Source: Podarcis bocagei (taxonomy: Eukaryota). Taken from it: DNA of 64,000 nucleotides. Position 1 is the stretch's first letter, and each line of letters begins with the position of its first letter. Below, piece after piece: positions 11,391 through 62,749 of this stretch. The notes beneath the pieces are model-generated. The model was not told the origin of the DNA, searched no databases, and worked only from the letters and a program-made list of their open reading frames with translations. The DNA lies in assembly GCA_964188305.1 (NCBI GenBank), contig OZ076890.1. One strand, 5' to 3'. A program made the position numbers and the translations under genes.

Positions 11391-11610
11391 AATGGCATGG
11401 AGAAGGAAGGTTGTGTCTAAATATCCCCAGTCAGTCACTACAGTGACCAGTGACCAGTTGTGCTTCCCACATAGTTGTGTATATTTCACCATGAATTTAT
11501 ATGTAGTTAACAGTCATCTGACTTACACATGTGCATGACCTAGCTTTCTTTTCTGCCTCCTTTTCTGTTCAGGCTGAAATACCTGTGCAAAGTGTACAAT
11601 GGAAAAGTTA

Positions 11611-11841
11611 CAGTGGTACCTCAGGTTACAGACGCTTCAGGTTACAGATGCTTCAGGTTACAGACCCCGCTAACCCAGAAATAGTACCTTGGGTTAAGAA
11701 CTTTGCTTCAGGATGAGAACAGAAATTGTGCGGCGGCAGCGGGAGGCCCCATTAGCTAAAGTGGTACCTCAGGTTAAGTACAGTTTCAGGTTAAGAACGG
11801 ACCTCCAGAATGAATTAAGTTCTTAACCCGAGGTACCACTG
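11611..11841 (+). mobile_element. Tc1/mariner-Tigger-type MITE, family CAGTGGTACCTC
   Basis: TIRs CAGTGGTACCTCAGGTTA / TAACCCGAGGTACCACTG with TA on both sides (11609-10, 11842-43). An inverted sister copy lies at 62750-62965. Confidence 0.92.
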
Positions 11842-11919
11842 TACTTTATAAAAACGAATGTAGGACAGTATTACCAGGTCACTTTAGGCTTCTTCAGAAA
11901 ATGTGAAACCTCTGTAATA

Positions 11920-19857: not shown

Positions 19858-21428
19858 GTACAATATTTCTTAGGGGGAAACAGAATTTAAAAAATGCAGA
19901 AACAAGCACATGTGAGGATTGCAAGCAATGAACATTACCTTGAGCCCTTCTCTTTTCAGTTTAGAGTACTGTGTGAGAATATTCTGGATGCTCCCTTACT
20001 TGTGAGAGGCCACAAAGTTTTAGAGAGGGTTATGTTGGTCTTCGCTTTTATACCAGGACACTACCCCAACATCCATGCATTTGGAAACTAAGAAACAAAA
20101 GGGGGTTCACCAATAGTATGTGAGTAGGTAAAGCTTTCTTCTTCTTCCATGTTTCCATGCTAGAGAAGACTAACTTGTTGAACGTCTGTCTTGTACACAG
20201 CTGTTAAATGCAAGGGTGTCTTGCTCTTTTCCATTGCCAATCCTATATCCTGCAAAGAGCTCAGGAATTATCAGTTGTAAACTAATTAGACTTTCACTAA
20301 TTGCTCTTAGGAAGCAATACAACATTCTGTACAAAACAAGGCAAAGTGTTTCAGAAGGTTGTGTGTGTTAAAAGAGATTTAATATTTACAGCAACCACGG
20401 TTCAGGTGCCCATGCTTGGATAAATTCAAGACTGAATTTTTAAACAGCAAGCCATGCATTCTAAAAGCATTTCTTGTGGACATTTATTTATACTTCGTAA
20501 TAATTATAGCAATGTTATCAGCACAGGTCAAGAAGTCACCCTTTGGGGATGGAGCAGCTTTAGCAAAAGAGGGAGATTTGAGTCTTTGACATGAATATAT
20601 ACCCTTTTAAGTGTTTATATCAGCAGCAACAACTCTCAATAATCTGCCTATTTCACACCATGGGTGAGGAAAAAATGAATCACCACTCCCCCCATGTTGC
20701 TCCTAATATCAGCTTAATAGCCTTTCCTGCATTTTCCATAAAGAACCCTAAGATGCCAAGAGAATGGTTGAAGTCAGTGGGCATGACTATGCCCAACTGG
20801 TGTACTCTGAGTAGGATTTCAGAATAAGACCCATATTGATGAGGATCTTCATTTGAATTTGCATTGTTAAAGGTGTGTTTACACACAGGGATGGGGCATT
20901 CAATTAAACCTGAACTAGAAAGAGCATGAAATCCTGTCTCTGTGGCTATCTTTTGTTTTGGGGTAGACATGCTTCTTTTCCAGTCACAGCTACGCTAAAA
21001 TCCTGAATTTCTCAATTTTCTCAAACGGAACCAAGATCTTTCTTCTTCTTTGCTTTAATCTAGAGAAAAACATCCAGAGGCACACACCTACACACTGAGG
21101 AAGAGCTAAAAACAGCTTCAAAATGAATCAGGAAGTCCTCCATTATCTGGGAAAGAGACTTCCTGAAGACTTTATGAAGCCAGTTTTGCATTCTTCCTTG
21201 GGTGCCTGTATGACTAATATTTTTCTATAGCACTCGTCAATCACAGCTCTGACTTCACCCATTAGCTAAGAACATTGAAAGGTATAGACAAGCTCATTTC
21301 TCACCAAGCAATTGCTTACTGCCTGCATATTTTGTTTTGACTCCTCATTTTGCTTCAGACCCCACTTTTTGAAAGAGCTGGATACAGACTTTTTAATAAA
21401 GCGTGTTCTCACTAAAGGAGAGCACATG

Positions 21429-22216
21429 TTGCGGATGGGGCCTAGCAAGACACCCCATAGTTGCCAGGCAGGATAAGATAGAGGGGCCTGGCAAGGATTG
21501 GCTGTTTGTGTTGCTGGGGTAAAATTGATGTTGCCAATTTGGGGGTGGGAACAGAGGTGATTTAAACAAGGTTCACAGCAAGCTGCTTTCTCTTTCGATA
21601 TGGGAACCGGATCACCCGCCCGCCCTCCCTTTTGGGCTTGTGCTTTGACCTTGCTATGCCTGTCATGGGGTCGTCCGCCTTGGTGCGGGGGCCTGGTAGG
21701 AATTTTTCCATTTGGCTGATTAGTGTGTGCCATTTGGTTTTTGCCTACTGCGTAGCAAATCGTCACAACTTGTAAGGTTGGCGGTTAGGCATTGGTTTAA
21801 ATTGGTTGGTGGAGGGGTATGGATTGGCTGTGCCTGCCCCTCCAATGCTGCTGCTGCATGGGAATTCCGTTAAAGGAATTCTGGGGCTTACCATCCTCTT
21901 GTCCAAACCCCTGGAATCGGGTGCGGGCCGCGTAAGACCCCAAGGAGCAAGCGGGGAGGAACTGAAGGGTCTGTGTCGCAGCCCCAGTTGCCCTGATCTT
22001 GTTCCTCCACACTGACTCTCGCTGGAATCCGGGAGTCAGTGCTGTCCCCCAAGGCGGGGGGGGACAGCTAGTCATAACCAATGCCTAAGCAACCACTCAC
22101 AATTTGTATGTTTAATAAAGTTGTGGCCAAAATTATGCCAAAAACCTTAAACAAAAATTTATGAGTGATGTGTGAGTTATTGGGGTAGGGGTGTTTTGGG
22201 GGACCTCAGCACGCAA
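21429..22216 (+). mobile_element. Non-coding LTR-like or DIRS/Ngaro-like interspersed element, copy A; structured, with an ENE-like motif
   Basis: GC/CpG-rich island bounded by TTGCG...CGCAA, with TATA-like TTTAAA at 21561-21566 and AATAAAGTTGTGGCC at 22114. Ordered motifs are shared with 33485-33855 and 56365-57000. No TSD found, so the class is unresolved. Confidence 0.7.
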
Positions 22217-25149
22217 AAACAAAACAAATGAATCCCTGTTTCTGCTTCTTGGTAGGTTTGTTTCTGAATCAGTAAGTAAATCACAGATCCAAACCCTGCC
22301 AGTCCCCTCTTCCCCACTCTGAAAATGAGGACTTTCAGGTAAAGTGGAAATGGCTTAGAAAGCCATCCGATATATGTGTTTGAAAATGGCTTATACAAAC
22401 ACACCAGTAAAAATGATTTCTGCCGGGATAATAGCCTAAGTTGTTGTAATGACTGAACTAGCCTGCATGCATACTCAGTGCAAATTTGTATCAGAGCACG
22501 TGAAGGGAAATATAACACTGGAAGTGTATCTAACAACCATTAGCTAATCCAAGTCTGCCTGTGTGCTCACGTAGCAGTGGTCTTAATTCTCTACATGCTG
22601 ATCCTTATTCAGGCACAATGTTACCACAAACAAACACAACAGGAAGATTTCCTGTTTGGAGGATCATTTGGGTTGGGTGGGGGACAACAAATGATGAAAA
22701 AAAGTCTTCCAAAATTGTTGCAGAGAATGAAAAACAGGGTGTTGGTGTGGCTGAAACCTTGAGCAGAAGCAGACATTTGCAACATTTTGTTACAGATCTG
22801 CTTGTATATAAATATAAATTTTAAAAGAAACCAAACAGCGCTGCAAACTATTTATAAGGGCCACATCCTTCCAAATCAGGCTGATGTTTGCTTAGAACCC
22901 TCTGGGTGAGAGTAACTCTGTTTAATTCAGTGAACAATTATCAACATGACAAGCTACGGTACCGCTGGCATGACAGGCGGACACAGAAGGGGAAGGACTG
23001 GCACTATTGGGATTTTCTCAGGTGCGAGTGGGAGCCCGGCAGGATCAGATACAGTTTGGGGGTCTTTCTTTTCAGCCTGCCATAGCACAGCCACACAGAG
23101 CTGATAGCGTGGGGCTGCTATAAAAGAAACCTATCATCACCCTCCCATCCCTGCTTCTGCTGAGGCCATCTCCAGACTGTTGGTATTTTGCAGGAGGCAT
23201 TCAAGCACGTACCAGGAAATGTAGGTTTGCATAATTAAAGTTGATTAAATTGCTCTGTCACTGTGGTGCACCAGATCCACTTTTTCAAATTAAAAAAGGG
23301 ACTATTTGCAGTTAGGTAGGTGCTGGGGAAATGCACTGAAAAGTGAAGGATGAATGACTGATTACTGGGAAGATCTGCAAACACCATGCAAGCAAATCCA
23401 GATGGATGCTCATTGTTGTATAACCTCTTTGCAAACATCAGAACCAATGTTCAGTAACGACCTGATATAGACTAACCTGCACATATGCTTTGTGTAAGCA
23501 AATCAGGATGCTCAATAAATAGGACATCTGGAGGAGCCCTGAATTACTCTTAGTAATGGGACAGTCTTTTGTAACTGGCATACATTAATTGCACGCAGCC
23601 AGTTGCTAAACTGATTTCTCATCAGCGGGTAATGCACCAGGGTCTGCAGCTGCCCTGCTGTGCCTCATGCCCCTATGGAACCACAGGCAAACCAAACAGC
23701 TTTGCTCATTGGCCCAATCTTTTTTTACTCCCATGTATCACTCTATGTCAACTCCTCTTTTGTTACTCTTCCTGCTGCATTATTTAAGTGAATATATATC
23801 TTCATTATTGCTTTCTATCAGCCTTTCCCTTCAAGGTGGGGTTGCAGGGATAGAATGTAAGGGACATCTATTCAAAATAATCCACTGTACATGTGGGCTT
23901 GAGCATACTGCAGTCATTAAAGAGAAGGCTGAACACCTTAGGGCACCCTGAAATAAGGTAGCTGATTTACTATTGTATTTTGCTCTGGGCAAGGATATTG
24001 CCAGATACTGTACAAGAAACAGAACTTCAGTTTCAAGCTTTCCAAGGAGAAAACACACTACCTATTGCATGAAGAGGTACACTCTGAGCACCCATGTTTC
24101 TGTCTTTCTAAACCCAATCCTTTAAACATTATGGAGAGGCTTAACACACACTTTGGAGTTTCTGCAAGACTCTAGTGATAATTTAGGCAGCAACTAAGGT
24201 GGCATAGCTAGCACCCACCTGACATGGGTAGCTAGCTACACAATTAAGGAAGGTAAATGAATATTCCAACCTTGCTGCACAGTTATTAATTAAACAGGAT
24301 TTCACCCCAGAGGTGGAGGCATTTGTGTAATTAATGTAACCATCTGTGTACGTGGAGGTAGTTTTGCAAAGCACTTAGAAACCCTCTGAGATACAAATGT
24401 GAGATGGTGATGAAGATGGTGATGGCAGCAGTGGAAGTTTTCTCTCTCTCTAAGTGTGGGTTTTGTCTCTGAATACAGTGTCAAATGCTACCCCACTTGC
24501 ACAAGAAAAGACAGTGACATACTGGCAACCTTCACAATGTTTAGGCTGTACATATAAAGTCTTATTAATTATCTGAATAAGGAGTACATAAAGAATGTGG
24601 CCTTTCAGTTCCATTCATATCACCATGCTTGCAGTGAGGATGAGGGTAATGATACAAAGTGTGATGTCAGTTAGCGAGGTCTGCATACAGAAACACATGA
24701 AGGCTGGTGAGTATAATGTAGCATTTGTGCCATACAATATTGTGGAAACTAAGAACAAAAGGTAGACACAATTCCTCAGTCTTCAACTCGTCTTAGCACC
24801 CATCTCAAACACCCAACCTGCAACATGGGACCCACTTTTATTTTGCCACCTTGCCTGAAATCGAATGTGCAGAAAATAAATCTGGGGAACAGTCATTTCC
24901 CTTAGAACATAGTACAGGCAGCACTTTTCTTTGTTAGATGCTGTAGTTTGTGGGATTTATGGCCAGCAGCTTCTCTTACTCTGAAGCAATACCAAAAGTA
25001 TTTTTTCCCTTTTATTTTGCAATGCCTTGCCATTTTATTTATTTCATCAATTTACTTAGGTAAAAAGTGACTAATTTTCACTTTCACCCCAATTCCTGCC
25101 CCCTGCATTTCTGCCACCCCATTGCCCAAGACAACTTGCAAGGTTCCCT

Positions 25150-27707: not shown

Positions 27708-28640
27708 TATCTGCTGTTTTTTATTCTTTTTTTCAAAATTATGTTATGTTGATTTCATAGGGTGCTCTCTATCTCTTGAATTATGCAATATAACAAACGT
27801 TCCATATTTCAACATTTTGTAAATGTCTCCAGAGTTCCCAACTCGATGCCTCCTCCCAAGACCTCTCCACATACAGGGAGACTAGATGCCTGGGAAATTC
27901 GTGCCTGCTGTCCCTAATCCAATTTCTGAGTACTGTATTCACCTACTTTTTCTGTACAGTGTTGTGTTTACAAGCTGTACGTGCATAGGCTTTGTATGCA
28001 GAATCTGTTCGCTGCAGCGTACAAATCATGCAGGCAGATCCTATATGTGTTCAGCTTCTGCACAGACAATGAGATTAATTTTCAGTGGTTTGGGTGGGGT
28101 CAACAGGTATGAGCTTTACACATACACCAGTGTTCATTCTCTCTGGTAAGTCAGTAGGGCTCCACTAGATTCTGATTGAAAGGGGGAAGATAGTTCCTCC
28201 CCTTTGTCCCTTTCCCAAGGTCCTGCTTCTAAAATCCCCCCAAAGGCCATTGATTTCATCAAGTGTTTTCTACACAAATGTCTTCAGAATTTTCCAAGTG
28301 AAACATCATTCATTGATATTGTTCTGGATTCCTTTAAGTTCAATTGAAGCTTTTCATTAGATTGTGATGATCTCATAGGATTACAGAACTTGCTTCAGAT
28401 GCAAAAGGTCAAAAATTCACAGCAGTGCCACAGCTTTACGAAGTTCATACACTATTGTTTCCAGAACAGGATCCTGATTTGACAATTATCTTTTCTTTTT
28501 CTGTAAATAAAATGTATGTCTACGTGACTACTTGGCTAACTATGAACTTTAATATTCCTAAACAGGCAAACCTTTCTTCAGAATCAATTGTAGAAGGCCC
28601 TGAGACAGGTTAGTGTGTGTAAATATTTAACAAAATTTAA

Positions 28641-28778
28641 GAAGTGGCTTAGTCATGCTGGCCACATGACCCAGAAGCTGGACGCCGGCTCCCTCGGCCA
28701 ATAAAGCAAGATGAGCACCGCAACCCCAGAGTTGGTCACGACTGGACCTAATGGTCAGGGGTCCCTTTACCTTTACCT
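28641..28778 (+). mobile_element. Sauria SINE, 5'-truncated
   Basis: GCTTAGTCATGCTGGCCACATGACCC...GCAACCCCAGAGTTGGTCACGACTGGAC...(CCTTTA)n tail. It aligns to the full copy at 63628. Confidence 0.92.
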
Positions 28779-29508: not shown

Positions 29509-31819
29509 ATCATCTACGGTTACCTATTTCTGCAAAGATCATCTGTTCCAGAGGTATAAGGAAAAGACACATCCAGGCAATTATGTTTCACACCTTAAGG
29601 AGACATCCCTCTCCATTTCCTCACTTGCTTTCGGATACTTGAGGAATTCCATCAAATTCTGATATGAATTTATCTGATCCATGCTAATGGGCAAATCAGA
29701 ATATCTCTGCCTATCAAATTTTGCATTTATCTGAATGTTATTATGCACCTCCTGCCTCTATATAGCAAGATGTCTTTTAAAATGAGTATTTTGACGTTAA
29801 ATGCATTTAGAAAACGTGTGTTTTGAAAGAAAAACATGTTTATAAATACATATTGAGAAAATGGATTCAAAATTTCTTATTTAAATACATATTTAGATGT
29901 AAATTTTCATGCAGGTTTTTTTTTTTAAAAAAGTCAGCCGATTAATGTGGAAATGAGAGAAAAATGTAAGAGTGACACAGAATGGAAACAAACTGATCTT
30001 AATATACTGTTTAAAGGTTTAGGTGTAAGGGATGGTTCGAGAGGGATGTAAGAGACTAGTTAGTTACAACCTGTCATTGAAAAAGGAAGTGGAACATTGT
30101 GTTTTAATCTAATTATTCAACTTAAAACAAAATTTCTACACTACGTTGCCCTGAGCCATCCAAATATAAAGCATAAATATATAACATGTCACCCAAAGGT
30201 TAACTATTTTTATTTCCCAAGATGACTAGATACCAATCCATCACCGGAGGCACTTTTAAACCACAGCCATTTATTCAAACAAATGAATTGGTTTTAGCTG
30301 AAGCATGGCTAATGGGAACTGTAAATTAGCTCGCTCAAGAATAGCCACAAAGCCTGCCAGATGGGACACTGAAAGAGAAATGAACATGTGTGTCATCATG
30401 TACGGAAATCACATCAGGAGATCGGCTGCAGTTGCAAAGAGAGGAAGCATGTCTATAATTGTCCAAAAGCACTTTATTCCTTTAATGCTGCTTCCATGAT
30501 TTGAGCACACTTGAGGAGACAAAAGAGGGTGGGGAAAGCAGTTGAATTATTAATTCTGTGCAGACCCTGATAGTTTAGGAATATCAAGGACTTCAAAGAA
30601 CTCATGGAAAGAAGGCAGCCAGACAACTTCATCAGGGTCCAGTAACACATGAAATATGAGCCCAGGAGTGAAGACTCCCTGGCACAGGTGGAAGATAGGG
30701 CAGTTTGAAGGAAAAACAGAAGGGAAGGCAGGGGTCTTAAGAGGTCACTAGTAAAAAGGCAGAAGGGGGGAAATTAGCAATGGTAATAACTGCTACTCCT
30801 GAGGGGAAGAAGAGACTTCTGATACATTTCTGCATTCCATCTGTTACCTTTTACACATGAAAAGAAAACTATTTACAAATACATATAATGTCATCTTCAC
30901 AGTAGACAGGTAGCCTCATAGTGTAGTGATGGAATGAGGAGCTATCAGCACTGTTCTGCTTTATGGAAATGGGTGTTCTGTTTTAGATGTCAGGGGCTGC
31001 AATGGAACCTTCCATGTTGACAGGTGTCAGAAAGTGCATATCGCTTATGATCTAACCCACCAGGCGATGCCAACACAGCATTGGATTCCTTCCCTATGGA
31101 AGCAAAATTAAACTAAGATCCATATGTGACAGGGGTAGGGAAACTGTGGCTCTTCAGATGCTGTTGGACTCCAGGTCCCATCAGCCTCAGCAAGCATGGG
31201 GCAAATGTTAGGGGTGATGGGAGGTATAGTCTTTGCTGCGAGACCTGCTCCCTGCTTGGCTGGCCTTTTCCTATCTGGCCTGGTACACTCTGGCTGCAAA
31301 ACTTCTGCTTCTGCCAAAGGAACCAGAGACCACCCTTGCTTTGAGTCCTGCAAGACCTGCTGCTCAAGCTGTCTAGAGACCGTTGGGGTGGGGTATTGTT
31401 TGGGAGTTTTTGCTGGGATCAAGATTTAATTTTGGAAATATTTAAATTTTGGTGTTATTGGTTTTTGTGCGTTTATACCTTTCTTTATAGACCTTATTAT
31501 GTGAGGATTGTTTAGTTTCATTGCATACTTATTGTCATGTTTTTATTTACTGTTTATGACTACTTAAATGTTATTTTTGTAATTCTGTAAATCTTTCGAT
31601 ATTGTAAGCTAACAAGCATGGTTTAACTTTGGAAAGGTGGCAAGCAAATAAACAATGATGAAGATAGTCCAGCAACATCTGGAGGACCTGAGTTTTTCTA
31701 TATGACAAAAGTGACCAGGGCAATAATTGTCCGATCACAGATATCCCCTTACTGAGTGCTCCAGCTGGAATTTGCCATTCAGCATCATATGCTTTTGGAT
31801 AAGACTGATGATCTATAAA

Positions 31820-32965: not shown

Positions 32966-33484
32966 TCTTTCTATTTTTACTGTCTATCCTTTTGGAGAAA
33001 GGGTGTGTGTAGCATCTTTGAGCATAGTATACAAAACACATTTCTTATTCATTTTATAACAGTTGCTTATCTCACCCTCCCAATACCCTTCTTTCCCCCT
33101 TTTAAAAGACATGCATTATGCAGGGTAGTAAATGACTGGAAAAGGAGGTGCAGAAAAAACTATAAATTGTAGATGACAAACCTGAAACATGGGTGCCACA
33201 AGTGGAATAGGCAGCAACGTGGTAACAGGATCAGTACTGTTTGTGGATTAGATATGAAATTGAACCAGGCATGCACTGGTGCTTTTTTTTTTTTTTTTAC
33301 TTGCTCAGTTGCCAGGGGGGCACCTATGCATTGTAGCACACACTGCAGTGGTGCTATATCATACTTTGGACAAATTGTAGCAATGCCATTGGAGTTTTAA
33401 TTATCTGATTTGAAATATGAATTTGTTGAGTTGCTAATAGCCAGATACCTCTATGCTTGTGGGCTACCCAATGGCATGTGCCTT

Positions 33485-33855
33485 CAGACAGATTGGGCCT
33501 TTCTGGGGGTTTCGCCTACCTCACGGCAAGTGTCACAACTTTATGGTGAATCCATTGGGCTGGATCTTTAATTGAACCAGACAGGGGGTGCCCCTTGCTC
33601 CTTGGGATCAAGGTATCCCTTTAATGGGATCCTGGGGGAAGTGGTTTTATCCTGATGCCCAGATGGGAGCTGACAGGCTATAGGACACCAAGTGGTGACC
33701 TTGAGGGGGTTGCCCTGATTTGATGTTCTCCATAGGGCAACTCTTAACCATGTCTAGCATCCACCAGCGATCAAGCTGGTTGATGTCAGGATATGCATCC
33801 AATGCTGATGCCAAAACCTGCTAACTTCTATAATCAATAAAAGTTGTGGTCTGTA
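33485..33855 (+). mobile_element. Non-coding element copy B (5'-truncated relative of 21429-22216)
   Basis: GGTTTCGCCTACCTCACGGCAA.TGTCACAACTT (33508-33541), ATCCCTTTAATGGGAT hairpin, GTTGCCCTGAT, CCAATGC..GCCAAAACC and AATAAAAGTTGTGG (33836-33849), in the same order as copy A. Confidence 0.7.
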
Positions 33856-35794
33856 TGAAATCCCGATATGGTTGTCTTTAGTTACAACTAACATCATGAC
33901 TGCCCCATCCTATCCACAGATCCATTGTGCCTGGGCCCATAAGTAAGCTTCATTGAGTCAATAGGACTTACTTCCAGCTAAGTGTGCAAGACTTAGTTGT
34001 GATGCATGTGTGAAACATGGATCCTTATAGGATTGGTCCATCTAATTTGCTATTGGCCTCACTGACTGGCAGTGACTCCAGAATTTGAGGCAGGAACTTT
34101 CCCTACCCAAAGACACCAGATACTAAATGTTGGACCTTCTGAATTCAAAGCATTTGCTCCACCACTGCAAAAGGAGAAGCTTTGAAAATAACAACAGACA
34201 AAACAAAACTACTATGACTGAGATGAATCAGTGATAACACTTGGGTCAATTCCATTTTTTCCCCTGCAAACACAAGGATGCTGTTTTCCTCTAAGGCACT
34301 GAAACCCTCTTGTGTTTCTGAGAGAGGCCTCAGTGGTGGTTGGATTTCCAAGCAGCTTGCCAACATCACTGGTTCTAAAACTAAAATTCCAGGGGCAGGG
34401 TAGTGGTAAAATGAAAAGCATATGAGTGTGCGTGCTTCAACATTACAAGCTGGTAGATAATCCTTAGTAAACAAATACGCTTTGTTCAAACACATGCCTA
34501 GAAATTCATAAATATCAAACTGATTCCATAGAGCTGAAGGGAGTTCCCCCTTCAATTTTGAACTATAGTACAGTTGCTAAGAAAGTACCCTACCAATCTC
34601 CCACTTTAATACTCTTGCTGTATTGACATTGACTCTTTCCCCTATCTTTTGCTTTGAAAAAACAGGGATCAATCAGCTAAACTAAACAGTTTCAACTGGA
34701 GAAATTTCAGTATAGCCTACTCCTCCTCTTCTAATGTCAGGATTGTAACCAAATTGTTTTGTGGATACAATCATTTTCCATGGTTGCAAAGAACCTTTGG
34801 GGAAGCAGTTCAGTTCTACCATGCACCCAGCTTCCTTTCATGTTTACTGTGTATTTCGTGTGTATCACATGTGCTCTCTCTGTATGCTTTTCCTGGGGCT
34901 ATGATCATAAGAAGTTTCCTTCCCTGTCACATGTACTATATGTTGAAATCTGTGATCTACTATTAATAAAAACAGGTAGTGTGTGAACTGAAAATGAGAG
35001 TGGGTTTTGAAAGCACATTTTTAGAAACACAATAAATGTTTTCCTTTCATTTCCTTTCAAATGTGCCTGCATTCTCAATGTTTCATTTTTCTTCTTTTTA
35101 ATGGTTAAGAAAAACTGATAACCAAAATTTTTAGATTCCCAATAGAAATAGATATACACACACCGCTACCAACAAGCCCTGGTTTCATTCATCAAAACTT
35201 GCTTTCCTTTTTTTTAGAAAATAGAAAGAATTTTATCAGGGTGGAAAATCTTTCATAATTTTTTATTTGGAGGAATGATTGTTTGAAAAAAGAAAACTGT
35301 TTCCATTAGAAAACTTTTGATGGACTCATGGTAGATGTGACTCTGTAGGTAGCAATATACTTAGAATGAAGCAATACATTTAGAGGAGAGCCAGGGAGGA
35401 TAATCAATCTAGAGGCTGGCTTATCAGATGAGAGTGTTGGTCTTCTGTGCATTTATGAGGGATAGACCTGCTTAGTATTTTGCTCATGATGTGTTCTCCT
35501 ACCTCTGTGAACCAAAATGACTCTCCTCTGATTCTAGAGTATGCATCTTAATTTAGTTTGCTCATAAATACCTTGTTAAGCAATAGTCCAGCCTCTAGAG
35601 ATCACACCAAGAGTTCAGTTTCACACCCCTGTCAATTCTCTGTACTGTACCCAAGCGAAAGTAAGGAGGTCCAGCTTACACTGGCCATAAAGTCTATTAA
35701 TCTCTGAATGAATGTGTATTTTTGCAACATATTCAGCTCCATCAGCAGTGTAGCATTTCCATTATTTTCCTTAAGGCAAGCCATGTCAAGAGTA

Positions 35795-36567
35795 CAGTGG
35801 TGCCTCGCAAGACAAAATTAATTCGTTCCGCAAGTTTTTTCTTCTTGTGAGTTTTTCGTCTTGAGAAGCACGGTTTCCCATAGGAATGCATTGAAAATCA
35901 ATTAATGCGTTCCTATGGAAACCGCTTGCCAGGCTGGCGGTGTGGAGAAGGGCTTTTCTCCCCACCGCAAGCCTTCAGGACAGGTACGGGAACAGAGGGG
36001 AAGGGGCGCAGCGCTTCTCCTCTGTTCCCGGGGCTTGCGGTGGGAGGAGGGTTTTTCCTCCCCACCGCCAACATTCAGAACAGCATTCTGAATGTTGGCG
36101 GTGGGAAGGAAAACCCTCCTCCCACTGCAAGTCTTCAGGACAGCCTTCCGAAGCCTGGCGGCGGGAGGAGGTCTCTCCGCCCCACCGCCAGGCTTCGGAG
36201 CAGCCCTCCGAAGGCTGGCGGTGGGGTGGAGAGACCTCCTCCCGCCGCCAGGCTTTGGAGCAGCCTTCCGAAGGCTGGCTGCGGGAGGAGGTCTCTCCGC
36301 CCCACCGCCAGGCTTCGGAGCAGCCTTCCGAAGGCTGGCGGCGGGAGGAGGTCTCTCCGCCCCACCGCCAGCCTTCGGAGGAGGTCTGAGGACAGTGGGG
36401 AAGACGCGCTGCGCTTCCCCGCTGTCCCGGAGATTTCCCTATGGGCTTTTGTCTTGCGAAGGAAGCCCATAGGGAAATTCGTTTTGCGAAGCGCCTCCAA
36501 AATGGAAAACCCTTTCGTCTAGCGGGTTTTCCGTCTTGCGAGGCGTTCGTCTTGCGGGGCACCACTG
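35795..36567 (+). mobile_element. Young Tc1/mariner-type MITE (CAGTGGTGCCTCGCAAGAC family) with a GC-rich internal hairpin array
   Basis: TIRs CAGTGGTGCCTCGCAAGAC / GTCTTGCGGGGCACCACTG, TA TSD (35793-94, 36568-69) and repeated subterminal TTCGTCTTGCGA motifs. Confidence 0.93.
36141..36380. repeat. Four 60-bp tandem hairpin units; unit 2 has an inverted core
   Basis: Units start at 36141, 36201, 36261 and 36321: CAGCC-TCCGAAG(C/G)CTGGCGG-core-CCGCCAG(G/C)CTTCGGAG. Confidence 0.95.
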
Positions 36568-39077
36568 TATACATAAGGCTGCCAGTACTATAAACAATCA
36601 GAGCACAACCAAGCCTCTGAAAGTCCAATGGCAATTTATTAAGACAGGATGTAAACTTCACAAAATTATCTTCTCCCACAATGAATGTGAACACAGTGAA
36701 CTATTTACCATGTAGGAGTACTATAGTATGCACATGACCACTTAGTAAGCAAGATTTCTACAGCATCTTTCCGAGAATGAAGAATTATATACATAACAGG
36801 TGCAGCAATCTTTTAGTGTGAGGGGGAAAAATCAAATAAAGAATAAATCATAGTTTGACAAGCACATAAAAATAAACAAAAAGAAAGTCCATACACATTA
36901 TCTCATTGATTCTTAGGCCTTCACCAAACTTCTCACTTTATAAACAGATGTGTATTCTATAGCTTCAGGTTTTAGGTCATATAGCAAGCAGCTTTCTATA
37001 TCAAGCATTAGGTTGTTGTTGGCATTTGTCTGTCTTGGGAGAAAATGGAGTGCCCCTCCAGGGGTGCACTGCTGTGTTAGCAGCACCGACGTGACCTGCC
37101 TGGGGCACAAGTTTGGGCAGTGTATATGGAGGTCCTGTGCTGCCCAGATGATAGGACCCCCCCTTCCTTGCCTCACTGATATGGTCCAAAGAAAAGAAGA
37201 GCAATATGTTTGGCACCAGCTTGCCTGCAGGAGTTGCTCTCATCTTAAAGGGGGGGGGAACCATTCTGTGTTTCAACAGAGAAAGCTAAGAAAACAAATC
37301 AAAAAATTACAGTTGAAAGAGCAACAACACCAAACTTACACTGGCACCCTCTGTGACAGCACAGGTTGCAGACTGCACTGTGGGAAGAAGGGGAGACAAG
37401 TGAAGTAGCTAACCCAGCTTCTCCTTTGATATTCCTCACTACTACTAAGTGGATATTTTTATTCCCTGGATGCCTCCACTGAAGGACCCTTTAACCTCTG
37501 GAATTTGGCCCAGATGACTCTCTGTGCTGGGCAAGGTGGTCAGATAATTAAGCATGGGGTGAAGAACAAGGCCTTAAAGATTTTTTCCCCTCCAAAAAAC
37601 AACTTTAGCTTTTACTAAAGGCATTTGAAAGGCAGCCACTTAAAGTTATTACAAAGATTTTTTTATTTTAGTTTTAGAAAATTCTTGAACAGTCAACCAT
37701 TAAGAACCAAATGGAAGTAACATAGGGCAAAAAATCATCCTGCTAAAATAAACTGGACTGTTTCCCTACCCAAGCCAATCCTTGGCAGTTCTTCATTTCT
37801 TGGGCTGAACTTTTTACCCTTCTGTAAACTTTTGAATGTTCTGATCAGAACAAGTCTGCAAAGTAGAAAGCGACCATATAACAAAAAGTGCAAAATAAAA
37901 TGCTGGAATAATTACACTCCTTCTCACCCTCCTTTCTTCTAGGTTTTCCTCATCAAAGTCACCAAAAGATGGTGCATCTTTGAAAGAGGCAACCTTACAC
38001 CCTGTGCATCTGCCTGAACCATAGTGAACCTTCTTCACACTGTCTAATTTCATCAGGAACAGAAATGCTGGTAAACAGCATCCAACATCTCCAAAAAGTC
38101 TAACCAGGTAACAAATGGACAAACCATCAAGATAAAAGGGAGACTGATAGTTCACTACAAGTACCTCTGCTGCCCCTGCAAAAGGGGTAGTGGAGTTTTG
38201 CTTTTATTTGGACCAAATTTTCATTTACATTTGACAAATCCCTCCCAAACATGTGATTGTTCACACAATCCAAGCAAGGTTTTTAAAAATGGCTGCAGTT
38301 TTGTTCAAAATTAGGACTAACCTGCTGTACATAGCAGTGATGTCACCACATGGGGTTATTCTCCACTTCAAGTAATTGGCTGCCACATGAGGAGGAGGCC
38401 AAAGAAATCACATGGGTAAGTGGCCTTAAGAATTTGCTGTGGGTAGGAGAACCAGATATGGGCCTTCCATTTTCTGTAGCAGTCCCAGTTCTAGAGTAAT
38501 GTCTATTTACACGCTCTGAGAATTGGGATCATTTTTTGTTTGAACTGACTGATATAAATGAAGATAATGTCTCCTTGTGTGTCCTCTGAAGAGAACAAGT
38601 GCTTGGGATCATCTTGGTTCCCTTTAGAATAAAGCTGTGAAATTATAGCAAATTTCGTACAGCATTAACTCTTTGACATGGCTTCTGTGGATGTTATTAT
38701 GTGCCAATCCTTCCTAAAGAAGAGCTGGGGTTTCCATACAACATGAAGTCCAAAACTTTAATGCCTATACTTGATGATTAGGAGTGTTCCTTATTAAATC
38801 CTCTTGCCTGGAATGGTACATAGTGACTGTGGATATGGAGCCAAGGTAAGCACATTAAGAGTTTTTGTTAAGCACACTCTCTCCCCAAATGAGGAATCTT
38901 CTCCCTAAGCCAGGCACACTGGAATAGGGTAAACAAATGGAAATAAGATTTATAAATTAGAAAGAATGAGTGGTGGAAATTAAGAGGGATGTATATACAT
39001 TAGTAGACAGTCAGCCTTTGTAGTCAGCATAGGTATCAGCTAGCCTAGTCCTTGTTGGTATTGTCATCATCATGATC

Positions 39078-43277: not shown

Positions 43278-43785
43278 TAGGGGTGAAGGAAGGCGTCATG
43301 ACAGCCAGGGCAGGCGTCACTACGTAGGGCGCATGTGTGGCATTGCTACGTATGACACATGCTCCATACGTAGCGACACCACACATGCGCTGTATAGCAG
43401 TTTGCCACCGGCACTGCTCCAGCGCCATATGGACGGTGCCGGGATCCCGCCGGTGCCGCTACAGCCACAAACGAAGGATCCCAGCACTGTCCATATGGCG
43501 TTGGACTGGCACTGGCAGCAAACCGCTATACAGAGCATGTGCAGTGTCGCTGCGTACAGCACATGCATGTGACGCCTCACATGTACCATACTTAGCGGTT
43601 TGCTGCTGGCGCCAGGATCCTCTGTTTGCAGCTGCAGCCGCGAACGGAGGATCCTCCGAAGGTGGCTGTGGCAGTGCGATGGCTGTTCAGGCCCCCGCGA
43701 GCCCCCATGGGGTGACTTCTTGTCACTCCTGCAGACATGGAACCCGGGGCGTACCGCCCCCCACACCCCTGTTGTGACGCCACTG
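43278..43785. mobile_element. hAT-superfamily MITE with nested internal palindromes
   Basis: Perfect 8-bp TSD GCTCCCAT at 43270-43277 and 43786-43793. Termini TAGGGGTG / CGCCACTG (CAGTGGCG-type TIR). CpG-rich. Confidence 0.85.
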
Positions 43786-44723
43786 GCTCCCATGACTCAT
43801 CTTGGGGTAGCCAGTGGGTATGCATCCCTGGTGCAGTGCGTGAAGGCCCCTGACAATCCTTAGTAGTCTCCCTCCCAAGTGAAACAGATTGTGCAAAACC
43901 GAATGAAGTCTCTAAATGTGATTTTCATCAATTGGCTGCTTGGCTTTAAAACCACAAGCGGGCTGCTACCAGTGACCACAATCTGCTTAACGGCTCTTTC
44001 GGGATGGGGGAGAAGGTTGAATTCATTTCCATCAGTTTTGCAGTACAGACAGATAATGGCACACAATCTTCCACGAGGTTTATATTATGTCACTTTGCTG
44101 GCTGCTCTGAAGTAAAGATTGGCGTTCAGGGTACTCGCCTCTATCTCTAATGCTAGATCTCATAAACTGAGTAGTGGATTGAGGCTGTCTTGCAGGACCC
44201 TCTGGTAGGATTTGAGAAACACTATTTTTTAAAAAATATACAGTAGGACATGACTAGTATTTTAATGAATAACTGGTTATGAGACATTATTAGCAATAAT
44301 TAGGGGGTGTGGTTAAATTTGAGAGAAATATGAGGCAACACAGATACTAAAAGAAAATGAAGCCCTGGGTCTAGATGTTCCAACTCTTGAATGCTGTAAA
44401 GTATTTGTAAAATAGAAGGCATTGCATAACTGATTGTGTTCTAATATGAAACACACAGAGTTAATTTTAACTACCTTCTTTCATTTATTACATTTCAGAT
44501 TTGAACATTATGGCGTTGCTTTTATTTAAAAAATCAATGGAGAAACTCAACAAATTTTTAAATGAAAGTTGAATTAACCTGCTTTCTTTCACTATAACTA
44601 TTTGAAACACCAATGAGTAAATGCTGGCTGCACCTTTCTTCTATGGTTTTAGCTTGCATCAGTAGCCACAAGTTAAATGTGCTGAAAATTCTTTCAGTGC
44701 CACAATTTCAAACATTGGTTGTA

Positions 44724-44977
44724 CAGTGGTGCCTCGCAAGACGAAAATAATTCGTTCCGCGAGTCTTTTCGTCTTGCGATGTTTTTCGTCTTGCGAAGCA
44801 CGGTCCGTCGCAACTGCGCCTCTTCAAGCGGCTTTAAAAAAAAAACGCAAGACGTTTTCGTCTTGCGAAGCAAGCCCATAGGGAAATTTGTCTAGCGAAG
44901 CAACGCAAAACAGAAAAAACCCTTTCGTCTAGCGAGTTTTTCGTCTTGCGAGGCATTCTTCTTGCGGTGCACCACTG
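44724..44977 (+). mobile_element. Short member of the CAGTGGTGCCTCGCAAGAC MITE family (254 bp, no hairpin array)
   Basis: Same TIRs and subterminal TCGTCTTGCGA repeats as 35795-36567. TA TSD at 44722-23 and 44978-79. Confidence 0.93.
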
Positions 44978-47248
44978 TATTCTATACTATATTAAAACCA
45001 TAGACAAGAAGAAGCTAACCACTGTGGGACTGTATTATTAATACTCTGTATAACTCAGTCTTCTGTAAGCTACCTATGCTAGTCAGAGAAAGGTCACAGT
45101 TAATGCTCCTAGAATTCATGGTTCTGTAGACAAGAGCTTTTACCTTGAGACACCAACCCTAACATTGTCTCTGAATCTAGATTACATGTCAGACAGACAG
45201 CAGTTTTAGGTGAGCCCTCTTTAGCCATTTTAAATTCTTCACTTCTATGCAAACAGTGCAAACTGAACAGAGGAAGCCATCTTTAGCAGCCAGTGGCCCC
45301 TGCATAACCCCTTCTGAGTTTGGGTGCTGATGGGGGATGTATGTTCATGGTGCAACAAAGATCAGGTGGAGGCTGAGTTTATCTGAGCCAGAACTTCAAT
45401 ACAAAACTTCAATATGAGGCTGCAAATGGTTAGTGCCATTTGCAATATGGCAGCGGGTGTGCGTAAAAGGCCTGAGACATTTATGCAAATTGCAGCAGCT
45501 GTGTTTACAGTATCCACACAATTCTGTAGTGCCCATGCACACTCTCAGAAGCAGACACATGGGATGTTTCTGGCCCAGGGCATGCGTGCAGGAATCCTTT
45601 TTACAGAACTGGCCAGTGGCCACAAATCCTAAATGGGTATAGAGTAGGCTGGGAGGCAGACCTATCCTTTGCAGAATTGCTTCATTTAAGTCCTTTCCCT
45701 GTTATGATGTGTCCTAAATTCTTTTGGGGTCTAATTTCCTACTGAAAGAAATGCACTAGCATCTTGCGTTTGTTGCAGCCACATCTCAAGTGAATGTTAA
45801 GGCCTGACAGTCCAACAAAATGACCCACTTCTTGCAGACTCAGACAGAAAGGCTCCGCTTAGGCCCTAGGAAAGTGTCTCTAATAAGGCAATTCGTTAGT
45901 TGTGTCGGCTGCTCCCCTCTCAGCTATCCTTCATTCCTTCTCTCCCTCCCTCAAGCTAGTCATTAATGCAGCAGGAACAGAGGAAAATGAAGCCGTTGGG
46001 TTCGGTATATATTACTGAGCTCTGTGTAGTGTGTATAAGACCATTATTTAGACACCCAAGTCCCCAGTGTGTTTTGATCACACCAGTCCAGCAGGAAGAG
46101 CTGTCTAATGGCTTGGTAGCTGGAATACATGTGTGTGCACGCTCTCGCTTCAGGAGTGCCTTTTACCAGCTTCATCAGTTGCTCCATCTGCACCCCTTCT
46201 TGGAAAATAAGGACACAACTACTGTTTGCTGGCTCTGGTAACTTCTCAGTTTGACTATTGCATGTGCCACTGCATATACCCTCCAACAGGTCAAGGAGAA
46301 AACGGGGCGGATACCTTTTCCAGGATACACTCCCATGTGAGTCCCGTTATCCGTGCAAGAGCACGGCTCCCCAAAATGGGATGTCGTGACAGGACAGTTG
46401 AGGGATATGCAATTATCTTTGAAGGTGCTCTGTCCAAAATGTAACTGTATGATTTTTAGCTAAAACAACTTCAATAAAATTTGTTTTGGGGCTCAAAGTT
46501 CTATTTTAACCGTTAAAGACCTATGTTGTCATGGTAGGGGCTTCTTTCATATGTAACTCCCTGGGTTCTGAGATCAAGAAACTAGGACTTCTGGCAGATG
46601 CTTCCACCGTGTCAAGAACTGCTGGCCTCTGTCTAATGATATGAGCCTTGCCGTTGCAGCTTCTCAGTAAAGTGTTAAGGACTGGGGGCCATTGTCCCAT
46701 GTGGTGAGCAGTGTCACTGAAAAAACTCAGGGAACTTCCTCCTTCTTGAGCAGTAAAGAGCATTAGGGGGATTCCTGTCTCGGCGGTGCTTTGATTAGAC
46801 AGCAAAACCTACCTGACCACTTGTGTTGTCATTTCTGGCTCCTGGCTTGTTTGACTGGCCTGCCTTCTGGATTTCCCTTCTGTGCTCTGGGCCCACAGCC
46901 CAGCTCTGACACACAGCCTGACCAAAGATTGGTTTTCAACAAAAATAGGGCTGCTTCTCTGTGGTGCTCCTTTGAATTCCCTCTGTATAGATACTTACTC
47001 GTTTTGCATGGCTGGTCCTTTCAGAAAGGCTTTCTTATTTAGGTAATATTTTGTCATGTTTTGTTGTTAATTATCTTGCAGTATTTAAATGTTTTGTTTG
47101 TACTGTGTTATTGTCCTCTTATTGATTTCAGAGCCTGTTTAAAAAAGGGGATTTTTTTTTTAATAAAGTAAAAGAGAGAGAGAGAGAGAGTGGGGAATAA
47201 ACAAGATGGAAGAAAGCTTTATGCCCATGCTAGAGAAGCAGGACATAT

Positions 47249-55200: not shown

Positions 55201-56364
55201 GCAACAAGGACATGGGCGGCAGCAATCCGACAGCAGAGCAAATTGGTCAGGACAGAGTGGATTGATCTATCTGGGAGAAATGAAGACACAGCAGAAACTC
55301 TGTTTTATGAGTGGGGATGGCTTTTGGCCTCTCTTACACTTGGCCAAGAAAGACAGGAGTATAACAGCAGCAAGGACATATTGTGAATCAAGCCAAGCAT
55401 CCTAGTGCCAGATCCCTACCTACAGATTAGTTGTCTGAAATGACTGTCTGTGCAGACAAGCACAGTCACCCAGCATATCTTAAGAGTATACTACTAGAAC
55501 TGCGTTCATAAGGCAAAAAGCCACCACATGACTGCTCTTGGTTGTTGCTTTTTTCCTAGGCTTTCCCCCTTCAATGTCTTCTGCTTCCTTTTTTCCATAG
55601 TACTAGCCGGACTGATGACTCTGTCCTCCATATATGCAAATCCAAGGCACATCTTGGTTTCATTTCAAACACTCATATTTAACAGCAGGAATAAAAATAA
55701 CAGAATGTCCTACCTTGCGTTTGCATTTGTGCAAAAGCATTTACCCAGGACCTATCTTGTACAAAGTGCTGAACAGAGCACAGAAGTAGCTTAAGTGCAA
55801 TCACATGTAGAATAAGGGGAAGGGCTTACAGGTCACTGACATGACTCTCAGACACACCTGATAGTCTTCATTTTAGAAATAATAAATCCAGGTAACTTAT
55901 TAAGTGTGCATATAAACCTGCTGCCACTGTCATCACTGGCTCTCTTTAATGAGGTTCTCATTAAGTCGTTTCAGCTTTGGAACACAGCATCCCACCTCCA
56001 TTGGGATGCAATGATTTGTTCCTTCCTGTAATGCAAAATTAGAAGCTAAAGAAAAAGTTTCCATGTCTTGGAAAATGGAATGTTGGGAGTCACATACAGG
56101 ACCCTCAAAGGTATTGGTTAAACAAATCCTGGCTACACTTTCACTCACTTTCATTCACTAAAACACTCACTTATCAAAATAATACAAGGATTTTCCTGCA
56201 GATTTCTGAAAGATATTTCATTTCACAAGCATAGCGACATGAATTTTTGGTTCATAATCATTTAGAACATCATGCAGGTGATTCCTTGCCACCTCAGGCA
56301 TGAAGTCTGCAGCTGATGTGGGTAAGACTGAGGAAATGAACACAAGAATCGGTACTGGGTTGAA

Positions 56365-57000
56365 TTAGGCCACACCTTTATTGATTACAGGTAAGAGTAG
56401 GTTTGGCTAAGTCATTGGCCAAATTGTATCTGGCATCAGAACGCCTACATGCTGGCTGATAGGAACCCAGTGGATCAACTGTGTGCTGGGGAGTCACCCA
56501 AAAAATGGATTAGCTGCCACGACCCCGTATGGACCTGCCATTCGGAGCTGTTTTGGCCCATTGGTCTGCAAGTGTGGACTCCCAGACCGATTCACGCCTC
56601 TTGGATTCCTTTAACTGGGTACCTGCATGATGAATATCCATCAAAGTTGTGACAGTTGCTATGAGGTAGGTAAAAACCTTTACACTGGTCAATTTGCTTG
56701 CAGGAGAAAATTCCTCTCTAGCCCCAAATACAGCAACCGATTAAGCACAGCAAGGTTCTTACATCAACTTGCCCACTCCCCCATTGAGGGGGCCCCTAAC
56801 AGTCTGGGTGAGTGGGAGGTAAATTCTGCATTGGTCCCCAAGGGTGGGCAGGGCACAGCCCCCATGCCCATGCCCCGATAGGCTTGCAGGCAAGGCCCAC
56901 CCAAACAATGGGTTCAGCATGGCCAGGGGAGGCCAACATCAAATGGCCATCCCCTCCCCCATCTATCCAGGACAAGGAGTTTATCCCTGGATCCAGCCAC
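56365..57000 (-). mobile_element. Non-coding element copy C (relative of 21429-22216)
   Basis: The minus strand reads AGGAATTTTCTCC...AGGTTTTTACCTACCTCATAGCAACTGTCACAACTTT...GTTAAAGGAATCC...CCAATGACTTAGCCAAACC...AATAAAGGTGTGGCC. The 5' boundary is approximate. Confidence 0.7.
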
Positions 57001-60335: not shown

Positions 60336-62749
60336 TATACTTTTAATTAACTTATTTAAAATATGTAGAGCCTCCTCCTCATAACCGGAGTGGTTTGCAA
60401 TCATAAAAAAATAAAATAAATACTAGAACTCCAAATATAGGTTGGTTTATAAAATCCCATAAATGAATAAATAAAATAAACAGGCGCATAATAAACTCTG
60501 GGGTGGGGAGGGGGATAAAACAGTAAATACACATTAAAACAGGTTGATAAACAGGAACCATACAAACGCTTGGATAAATAAGTGGGTCTTGAGAACCAGG
60601 TTATTCCACTTTAGTTGGGGCATTGAGCAAAGTTGGTAAATGGAGCTCCTCACTGAGGAAGCTACTTGTGCCTCCAATGATAATGCTTAGCTCTAGGAGC
60701 ATGCCCAGACTACATGTGCATTCTTTTAGAGCAAGGTTTTTGATGGGAGTTGTAGTTCAGCAATATGTGAAGTGCCAAAGGTTACACAGGGATAAAGGTT
60801 CACTTCATCTGTACAAAAGGGAACAGATTCTCACGCAAATCTGATCTTCCTCCAGGGGACTTAACAGGGAGGCTCATTTGATGCCTTTGTTTCATACAGT
60901 ATCTTTAGGTGCCAGGCGATAAATATTTTCACATCTGGATCTGGAAGGGAGAAGGATTCTCTGGTCACACTCTGGCTTCTCTTCCCTTTTCAGCCAGCCT
61001 ACAGTTGCAGAAAATACTATGGGAAATAGAGGTTGTAGTGCTGACTGTCAGTGTCCAAGTCCAGCACTGCAACATAGCTAGGATATCCTGAACCTTACCA
61101 CTGGGATGCTGGTGGTTTTAAGCTGCCTTGCATCTGACTGGGAGTGCAGGGCACTCAGCTCTTGACAGGATTGCCTCCTCTTATTATGGCTTTGCCTTGA
61201 ACAATGAGAGTTATTTAACTATTTTCATTAAAGACAGTGCATTTTTTTTTTGGAAGATAAAGATAATTAAGTGCTGAAAGTGTGGCGATCCATTTGACAC
61301 AGTGAATAAAAGATATGAAGTATTTCTAATAAAAGCAGAACCCCCACTGGGACTTGAACTCACTGCCTATCTTTGCAGTCTAAGCAAAGCATTCTGTTCA
61401 CCAGGCAAATACTTTGCATTCACTCTCCATTGCTGGAATTTATAACTGCGATATTGGCTGCACACACTGGGTCTCCCAGTTGTTGTTCTCTAAAAGCAAA
61501 AGAAATATATTGTTTCTTGGATGCTCTGTGAAAAAATAAATAATTTTTATAAAAATGAATGTACGTGTTATAACGTTCCAAAACCTGTTCTCTTATTTGT
61601 GCCAAGATCTACAGTGCATGCTTAATTCCATTGCCCACACTCTTATTTCTTCTGTGTGATATCCTCCCCCCACTCCTTTTCATCAATAAAAAATGTGCAA
61701 ATAGAATGGCCAAGGGAGGCTTCCGGCTTCCCAGACAGCCACTTCTTCATGAGCAATGCTGGAATAATCTGAATGCCGGATATGGTTAAACTGAGTAGGT
61801 CTGTACAAGCACACTCCAAATAATGTCTCCAGTGCTCCATATGGTCAGTGTGCTCAGCTATTGCCTTGGGTCCCCATGAAGCTAGCCCTGCGGAGAAGGA
61901 GACAATGCCACTTATGTCATACATGGAAGGACTTGTTTCTGCAACTCCCCAAAATGCCACTGTGAATCAAATCACACAGACTTCCAGAAATGCATTTGTC
62001 CAACATAAATTATGCCTCTTTTCAAATCCACCTCCCTTATCAGGTTAACCAAGAATGTGCACAAATACCTGAGTTATATGCCCTAGATTTTGGGGAAGAG
62101 GGATCAACAAAGTAAATCCTTTCAACAAGTTTTCTTCACTGTTTGTATTCAGTGGTGGACTCCAATAAACCTCAAAGAACTATGGAATTCACTGATTATT
62201 TTGTCCCTGAGCTGGTGCAGATTTTCTTCCACCTGCACTGCCCACACATGCCACCCACTAACACCAACTTCTTCCTTCCCCCTCCTGTTTTTACTGCTGT
62301 GGCATGGGTGTACCAAGGTTCCCAAGGGCAATGCCACACTCTGGCAAAGGACTCTAGGGAATGTAGGGTCGTTCTTCAGAGTGAGGCATTGTGAGATGGT
62401 CCCAAACAGCAGCTGCAGTAAAGCAGTAGCATTGCAGGGGTTCTCCAGTGCCACCCAGCTCTGAATGCCTGACACCACTGTGGGAATGCTGCTGACCACT
62501 TTACTGCAGTGGCAGCACTACTAGCAGGCAAGGGAAACATGGAAATTCACCACCTTTCCTGATTTGCCATCTGATTGAAAGGTCTCAGTGTAGCTAACTG
62601 GCAGGTTGGCCCTGCACATCCAAACTTGTATGTAAACTTAAGAGAATAAAATTTTGCTGAAGTAAAACTGGTGTGGAGGTTTCAAATGCAAACACACAGA
62701 ATCTATTTCAAGATCCATTATCTAGAACAGGGGGTGGGGGCTTAGATTA

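Follow-up and report, generated by a model that had tools for sequence, protein, structure and literature searches.

Layout of the locus

The DNA analysed here is a single window of 64 kb, free of N, within which both the searches for copies and the background estimates were carried out. Its GC content is 42% and its CpG observed/expected ratio (o/e) is 0.21. The window contains a 0.8-kb repeat, called copy A below, whose features are collected in Table 1 together with those of its relatives. An earlier note on this DNA had described the stretch as ORF-less and the description stands, as the longest ORFs of copy A were assigned to no Pfam family. No Pfam family was found among the window ORFs tested either. 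Comparison of 21200-22400 with Rfam by cmscan, at E values up to 10, returned no family and no hammerhead or other ribozyme. Over the whole window, the Rfam scan at gathering score gave only one tRNA-like match, located away from copy A. Besides, no Alu was found in the 64 kb, which excludes a human source, and a scan for bacterial promoters and terminators was uninformative.

Three occurrences of a GGGGCC motif are found in the 5' part of copy A, together with Y-boxes and a palindrome of kappaB-like type. The ATTGG and TTTAAA (21561) boxes that had been proposed as promoter elements were confirmed at their positions, with promoter-like and poly(A)-like signals in place, and all six helices named at the outset were recovered where they had been located. 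At the 5' border, a short hairpin (21403-21425) encloses the 9-nt purine run AAAGGAGAG; folded as DNA, it reaches -4.2 kcal/mol, with a z-score of -2.0. Towards the 3' end, the blocks flanking the core signal are able to pair with each other, enclosing AAUAAA.

Table 1. Coordinates of the features of copy A and of the related copies in the 64-kb window.
Feature	Position	Strand	Remarks
Copy A as indel unit	21401-22214 (814 bp)	+	GCGTG...CACGC ends, AAA on both sides
Copy A under the LTR model	21427-22208 (782 bp)	+	TG...CA; flanks GCACA / GCACG
Hairpin, 8 bp, 7-nt loop	21403-21425	+	between the two candidate 5' ends; contains the purine run
TTGCG / CGCAA	21429-21433 / 22212-22216	+	5-nt inverted repeat
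U3-like motifs, GGGGCCTRGCAAG twice	21437-21505	+	third copy at 21688
Y-box/inverted CCAAT GATTGGCTG	within 21437-21505	+	again at 21821
ATTGG (inverted CCAAT)	21497-21501	+	copy A sequence
TTTAAA (candidate TATA box)	21561-21566	+	not conserved in B, C, D
Conserved block 1, ending in GTCACAACTT	21736-21771	+	GTCACAACTT identical in A, B, C
Hairpin TGGAGGGG/CCCCTCCA	21810-21844	+	segment absent from copy B
Palindrome GAATTCC-GTTAAA-GGAATTC	21862-21881	+	loop block TTAAAGGAAT also in B and D
Longer-range helices CTGGGGCT/AGCCCCAG and GGAGGAAC/GTTCCTCC	21881-22018	+	both in the minimum-free-energy fold
Twin adjacent hairpins, stems of 12 bp and 10 bp	22010-22068	+	private to copy A; strongest local structure signal
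Core-signal block: CCAAT 22078, about 35 nt, AATAAAG.TGTGGCC 22114-22128	22078-22128	+	conserved
AATAAA	22114-22119	+	copy A sequence
GT-rich stretch, like a poly(A) downstream element	22163-22199	+	GT/T-rich analogue in B, C, D
Copy B	56273-56935 (663 bp)	-	TG...CA; perfect 6-bp duplication TGATGT at 56936-56941 and 56267-56272
Copy C	33432-33952 (521 bp)	+	TG...CA; perfect 6-bp duplication TTGAGT at 33426-33431 and 33953-33958
Copy D, degenerate	30187-30641 (about 455 bp)	-	TG...CA; flanks TGTTAC/TGTTAT, 5/6 matching

A family of diverged copies

At least four very diverged, colinear copies of the repeat are present in the window. Besides copy A, copies B, C and D were found, which bears out the proposal that copy A belongs to a repeat family. 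Pairwise similarity reached an E value of 1.4e-7 between B and C and of 0.005 between A and B, and copy D was detected with a profile built from the three other copies. Three blocks are common to the family: the block ending in GTCACAACTT, TTAAAGGAAT, and CCAAT plus AATAAAG.TGTGG followed by a GT-rich stretch. The distance from CCAAT to AATAAA is conserved at 34-38 nt in A-D, and a GT/T-rich stretch is found 25-50 nt after AATAAA in every copy. What appear to be U3-R-U5 signals (CCAAT, about 35 nt, AATAAAG, GT-rich) follow one another in the same order and with the same spacing in all four copies. Because the GT-rich stretch lies past AATAAA in every one of them, these sites resemble poly(A) sites of genomic type, which favours LTR-like units over retroposed mRNA ends. 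Outside the shared blocks, the copies do not align. The 5' parts of A, B and C vary in length, as is typical of U3, and their similarity does not exceed that of shuffles; nor does that of the supposed U5 (the final 60 nt). What seemed to be an A-B alignment ahead of the start of copy B was discarded as noise.

The CpG o/e is 0.43 in copy A, 0.21 in B and 0.13 in C, for a background of 0.17-0.21. Together with the haplotype lacking copy A described below, this fits copy A being the youngest copy and a comparatively recent arrival.

Relatives were also sought in external collections. Neither the 94-aa ORF in the hairpin core nor the 60-aa ORF over the conserved blocks of copy B had a match in protein collections, no close relative of copy A was reached through spurious ORFs in two protein collections, and patterns of block 1 and of the poly(A) block gave 0 matches against viral contigs. 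The contig Ga0268261_10102745 (L001 716-760, arthropod-like), from a single metagenome scan, matches copy B block 1 over 33/36 nt and nothing else; with only about 36-40 nt in common, it was rejected as a relative. The literature on squamate solo LTRs and on a MITE motif provided nothing useful. As a side observation, block 1 in B and C contains CTACCTCA, a let-7 seed match, which may be due to chance or may be a short functional motif.

Ends and target-site duplications

The ends of the copies were located by scanning for TG...CA pairs with matching flanks, which delimited the B, C and D units given in Table 1. Searches placed at random gave a perfect 6-bp pair in 17-19% of the cases with wide ranges and in 6% once the 3' end had to fall 85-120 nt past AATAAA, a restriction picked after B and C had been seen. 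The joint chance of finding perfect 6-bp pairs in 2/4 copies is about 0.02-0.03. The 3' ends are located 94 (A), 109 (B), 116 (C) and 88 nt (D) after AATAAA. The only TG...CA candidate for copy A has flanks that match at 4/5 positions, with one CpG-type transition, and is at chance level when taken alone. No terminal inverted repeats beyond TG/CA were found, nor any of at least 10 nt. Copies B, C and D have no A-tail, and the A-run flanking copy A is also present in the empty allele. Taken together, the TG...CA ends, the 6-bp duplications and the common 3'-end geometry point to solo-LTR anatomy. No partner LTR, PBS or gag/pol remnant was found in the 64 kb. TTGCG/CGCAA, which had been suggested as the ends of the element, is an inverted repeat at chance level, and no other line of evidence places the ends there.

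The borders of copy A could also be deduced from an allele without it. A spurious 166-aa ORF on the - strand, lying across the 5' end of copy A, had P0001 as its sole match in searches that included 1.84 billion representatives. P0001, itself the 94-aa product of a spurious ORF, was derived from a Logan contig of 1,392 bp. Identity to 21400-21269 extends over its residues 51-94, and its residues 1-29 match 22317-22231, with only 21 residues between; the flank match covers 72 residues with one difference. Since P0001 joins both flanks of copy A, it stands for a near-identical haplotype without 21401-22214. The empty-site junction, back-translated from P0001 under guidance of the (TTTTG)n run, reads AAT-AAAAA-C, where the window has AATAAA, the 814-bp block and AAAAAC. 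The block has GCGTG...CACGC ends and 3 nt (AAA) duplicated, i.e., 0-3 nt within the A-run. An integrase would be expected to leave a duplication of 4-6 bp around a unit ending in TG...CA, and GCGTG...CACGC with AAA are not integrase ends. Relative to the block that the empty allele lacks, the TG and CA of copy A are set inwards by 26 nt and 6 nt, respectively. With one GCACG copy counted, the 26 nt left of TG and the 6 nt right of CA would form a 27-nt near-perfect palindrome. The proposal of ends without target-site duplication is in line with the empty site of copy A, which shows no integrase-type duplication, and is at odds with B and C (perfect 6 bp) and with D (5/6).

Just right of the insertion site, near 22216-22231, the haplotype without copy A is longer by about 37 nt and carries four (AAAAC) units where the window carries two. 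Such extra nucleotides and a longer (AAAAC)n beside the copy A site indicate an indel-rich region. As a separate observation, the 10-mer TTTAATAAAG is found both at 21392-21401 (left junction), where it includes the first base of the 814-bp block, and at 22111-22120 (poly(A) signal). About 0.35 pairs of such 10-mers are expected by chance, and the coincidence may mean nothing.

Folding of copy A and conservation of structure

The description of copy A as rich in hairpins was upheld against shuffles, both for 21590-22140 (z -5.1) and for the whole element (z -3.6). Folded as RNA, 21590-22140 reaches -231 kcal/mol on the + strand (z -5.06), and its - strand gives a z-score of -3.83. A rerun yielded z -5.3 for copy A, whereas 14 genomic tiles of the same size had a mean of -0.30 (sd 0.98) and a minimum of -1.6. 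Perfect inverted repeats with arms of at least 8 nt number 6 in copy A vs. 1.6 in shuffles (p 0.005), and their summed arm length is 52 vs. 13.6. Among genomic 815-nt tiles, this inverted-repeat count reaches only the 95th percentile. Folded as DNA, the twin hairpin 22011-22068 has a z-score of -4.7 and the GTTAAA hairpin of -5.1. In 150-nt windows, the fold signal peaks at 21925-22149 with both strands about equal. Because of this near equality, the helices of copy A are to be regarded as DNA palindromes first; G-U pairs give the + strand a slight folding edge. The earlier note had set its proposal against ordinary solo LTRs with target-site duplications and a folding no better than that of shuffles. 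Such duplications occur at B and C and, with 5/6 matching, at D, but copy A outfolds its shuffles.

The structure was also compared across the copies. By fold z against shuffles, neither B nor C is structured to a degree comparable with copy A: B does not stand out from its shuffles (z -0.48), C does so weakly (z -2.1), and no excess of inverted repeats was found in either. The GTTAAA hairpin, the one that lies at a homologous place, forms in A and C, where one pair has changed in a compensatory way, and its stem is broken in B and D. Covariation of this hairpin across the copies was not beyond that of shuffles (262/500), with 69% of the cells pairing. With these values, the idea of a family that conserves structure over sequence has to be given up, as it is blocks of sequence that are kept.

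In 4/4 copies, AAUAAA lies between a GCCAAACC-like and a GGTGTGGC-like block that are able to pair with each other. In this register, 81% of the cells pair vs. 22-50% in slid registers. The changes in the stem are only one-sided, from G-C to G-U, and are compatible with the + strand only, and no pair changing on both sides was found among the four copies. The individual folds of this stem are weak, with z-scores of -0.6 to -2.1 per copy. A predicted poly(A)-signal hairpin around AAUAAA, common to the four copies, may be considered as a lead.

A solo LTR as the best explanation

The 0.8-kb stretch most likely belongs among the ordinary repeats and does not represent a novel class of parasitic structured RNA. 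With chances that we consider about even, copy A would be an LTR, in the most likely case a solo one, derived from an integrase-type retroelement, either an endogenous retrovirus or an LTR retrotransposon. Copies B, C and D are best explained as older copies of diverged sister families. Among the solo LTRs of ERVs and LTR retrotransposons, the nearest are those of a class II (beta-like) ERV with 6-bp duplications, or the high-copy, ORF-less families of the mammalian MaLR kind. As in solo LTRs, A-D are 0.45-0.8 kb long, with a variable U3-like 5' part carrying repeated factor-site motifs. They share the CCAAT plus TATA/AATAAA block, the GT-rich element and the distance of about 100 nt to the end, and they are dispersed in both orientations and differ in age. 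B and C add TG...CA ends and 6-bp duplications, and D a 5/6 match. Unlike solo LTRs, the presence/absence block of copy A is devoid of TG/CA ends, the terminal inverted repeats are only 2 nt long, the 64 kb hold no full-length element, PBS or PPT, and the supposed U5 is unconserved. The failure of this U5 to align and the lack of a partner LTR, PBS or gag/pol count against a solo LTR, as does the mismatch in duplication length, i.e., 5 bp for copy A vs. 6 bp in B, C and D.

By analogy with known LTRs, the variable 5' part would correspond to a U3 enhancer with repeated motifs (Y-box/CCAAT, kappaB-like palindrome, three GGGGCC). CCAAT, the 35-nt spacer and (TATAAT-like)AATAAAG would act as core promoter and/or poly(A) signal, and the GT-rich stretch together with the last 90-115 nt or so as downstream poly(A) element and U5. 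Dimeric factors could bind the palindromes on the DNA, or the palindromes could form stem-loops in R/U3 of the element RNA; transcription and any role of the hairpins are, like the LTR identity itself, what we infer from known LTRs. With TTTAAA at 21561 as TATA box, all the hairpins would fall within an R of about 550 nt. If instead the TATAAT-like/AATAAAG block is the promoter, the hairpins would lie in U3, i.e., in the 3' untranslated end of the element RNAs, where the export or stability elements of some retroviruses are located. Parallels for LTR stem-loops are TAR, the poly(A) hairpin and the Rec/Rem/Rex-responsive elements; known cases include the TAR and poly(A) hairpins of HIV-1, the Rex-responsive element of HTLV-1 (in R) and the Rec-responsive element of HERV-K (in U3-R). 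Copy A resembles these RNA elements in its stable stem-loops over several hundred nucleotides upstream of and around the poly(A) signal, and the family in the stem enclosing AAUAAA in 4/4 copies. Unlike them, it has no sequence or model match and no covariation, and its big hairpins are private to A and strand-symmetric.

As the 814-bp block has neither TG/CA ends nor a 4-6-bp duplication, a solo LTR requires a second event to account for the odd empty allele. The LTR may have integrated into the small 27-nt palindrome in the lineage of the window, with this palindrome lost by slippage in the other lineage. Alternatively, a fragment containing the LTR may have been captured without integrase.

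Alternative explanations

The junction of the empty allele favours reading the 814-bp block itself as a mobile unit independent of integrase. According to this allele, the ends lack TG/CA and any repeat in the A-run is limited to 3 nt; these features, with a terminal inverted repeat of 5-7 nt and the 8-bp hairpin at the 5' end, would suit such a unit, for example a DIRS/Ngaro-like solo terminal repeat or a non-autonomous derivative, inserted from a circular intermediate without real target duplication. The promoter and poly(A) signals fit such terminal repeats equally well and, as in DIRS/Ngaro elements, copy A would be an ORF-less LTR-like repeat with its own signals and with a junction that fits insertion without canonical duplication. 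However, these elements are characterised by ITRs with an internal complementary region or by split direct repeats. Neither these nor long ITRs were found here: the terminal inverted repeat is limited to 5-7 nt, and the direct repeats are of 19 nt at most and not in A1...B1A2B2 order. The perfect 6-bp duplications and TG...CA ends of B and C, and the lack of any reverse transcriptase or recombinase remnant in the window, also speak against it. We therefore consider this reading unlikely, and the view that a DIRS/Ngaro element fits better than an integrase LTR is not retained, as the repeat architecture is absent and B and C have target-site duplications. In its boldest form, at similarly long odds, the 814-bp block would be a recently active ORF-less unit, ending in a hairpin and duplicating 0-3 nt, that moves without integrase through a tyrosine recombinase or borrowed LINE machinery. 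Equipped with a Pol II promoter and a terminator of its own, and with an RNA that is densely folded, it would be an LTR-derived structured-RNA hitch-hiker instead of a passive solo LTR. Retrozymes and Penelope-like pseudo-LTRs are likewise non-coding, structured, repeated and transcribed units, but copy A has no ribozyme match (E up to 10) and no tandem arrangement.

The same block could be a secondary copy, made of the LTR with 26 nt and 6 nt of neighbouring sequence and inserted by other machinery. A read-through RNA could have been reverse-transcribed by target priming after cleavage by a LINE endonuclease, or a fragment of cDNA or DNA could have been captured during break repair. The empty junction is AAT|AAAAAC, whose bottom strand TTTTT|A is the classic LINE nick site, the 3' end of the element abuts five A's, and 3 nt are duplicated. 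The internal TG...CA unit would have kept its own old duplication with one mismatch, and the purine run AAAGGAGAG is found 4 nt before TG, at the position of a polypurine tract. This scenario appears improbable to us, as no poly(A) tail is present beyond the A's supplied by the target, no poly(A) signal lies less than 90 nt from the 3' end, and nothing explains why an RNA would start 26 nt before the LTR and stop 6 nt after it. Besides, the 6 nt after CA do not resemble a primer-binding site, and a 3-nt duplication is short for L1. As for LINE-dependent retroposons in general, the copies differ from them by the lack of a 3' tail in B, C and D and by the GT-rich element past the poly(A) site in all copies.

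Far less credit can be given to a cut-and-paste DNA transposon or to a host gene. For a non-autonomous transposon with very short TIRs and a 3-bp target duplication, the block can be written AAA|GCGTGTT...AGCACGC|AAA, i.e., a 7-nt inverted repeat (6/7) with a 3-nt duplication. Such an inverted repeat is no longer than chance allows, AAA differs from the TWA target of PIF/Harbinger, the ends do not resemble CACTA and are missing in B, C and D, and the LTR-like internal signals would be left unexplained, all of which makes this origin very unlikely. In the same way, MITEs differ from the present family, since the true MITEs of the window have TIRs of 22-25 nt, for 7 nt (6/7) in A and none in B and C. 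Helitron-type ends (5' TC, 3' CTRR, A|T insertion, Helitron2 asymmetric TIRs) were looked for by eye on both strands and were absent. A host gene for a structured ncRNA of about 550 nt, running from TTTAAA at 21561 to AATAAA at 22114 with its shape under selection, could account for the z-score of -5 on the + strand, better than on the - strand, and for the AAUAAA-stem changes, which are all G-C to G-U and compatible with the + strand. Such a gene is highly doubtful, given that the block is missing from a close haplotype, that helices and TTTAAA are not kept in B, C and D, that palindromes score on both strands, that Rfam gives no match, and that the copies are dispersed in both orientations like repeats. 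Nor do the helices have support from compensatory changes across A-D, unlike those of conserved structured ncRNA families.

If copy A is a solo LTR, it belongs to ordinary genome furniture, and the value of the result lies in the annotation of at least four copies in 64 kb. Being young and variable between haplotypes, copy A could be used as an insertion marker, and it could donate promoter or poly(A) signals to neighbouring genes. Its hairpins and the AAUAAA stem could form an RNA element carried by the LTR and acting in export or in the control of polyadenylation. If the non-integrase breakpoints were general to the family, they would indicate a non-canonical movement of LTR-like units.

Other repeats in the window

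Several unrelated repeats were recorded along with the family. Two copies of a MITE of about 235 bp and of Tc1/mariner type, which we take to be of a kind present in lizard genomes, are located at 11609-11843 and 62743-62955, in opposite orientation and 90-92% alike. Such MITEs suggest a vertebrate source, probably a squamate. Their TIRs start with TACAGTGGTACC, and an internal 16-nt tandem repeat is found at 11621-11665. Another MITE family, whose inverted ends TACAGTGGTGCCTCGCAAGAC are 22 nt long, is represented at 44721-44980 (260 bp) and 35792-36570 (779 bp), the longer copy containing a 60-nt palindromic tandem array of about 5 units (36037-36387). Nowhere else in the window is CpG as abundant as in the TACAGTGGTGCCTCGCAAGAC-ended MITEs (o/e 0.7-0.98) and, from this high ratio, they are probably young. 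A long, imperfect and CpG-rich palindrome of foldback-like appearance covers 43300-43700 (GC 0.55, CpG o/e about 0.6), and the 815-nt tile starting at 43201 has 9 perfect inverted repeats of at least 8 nt. On the - strand, 15441-15510 matches the Rfam tRNA model at gathering score (29.8 vs. 29 bits), whereas ARAGORN finds no tRNA there; it is probably the tRNA-derived head of a SINE or a decayed pseudogene. Finally, an unclassified interspersed repeat occurs as a 110-nt direct repeat at 28640-28749 and 63824-63933, the two copies being 87% identical and 35 kb apart.
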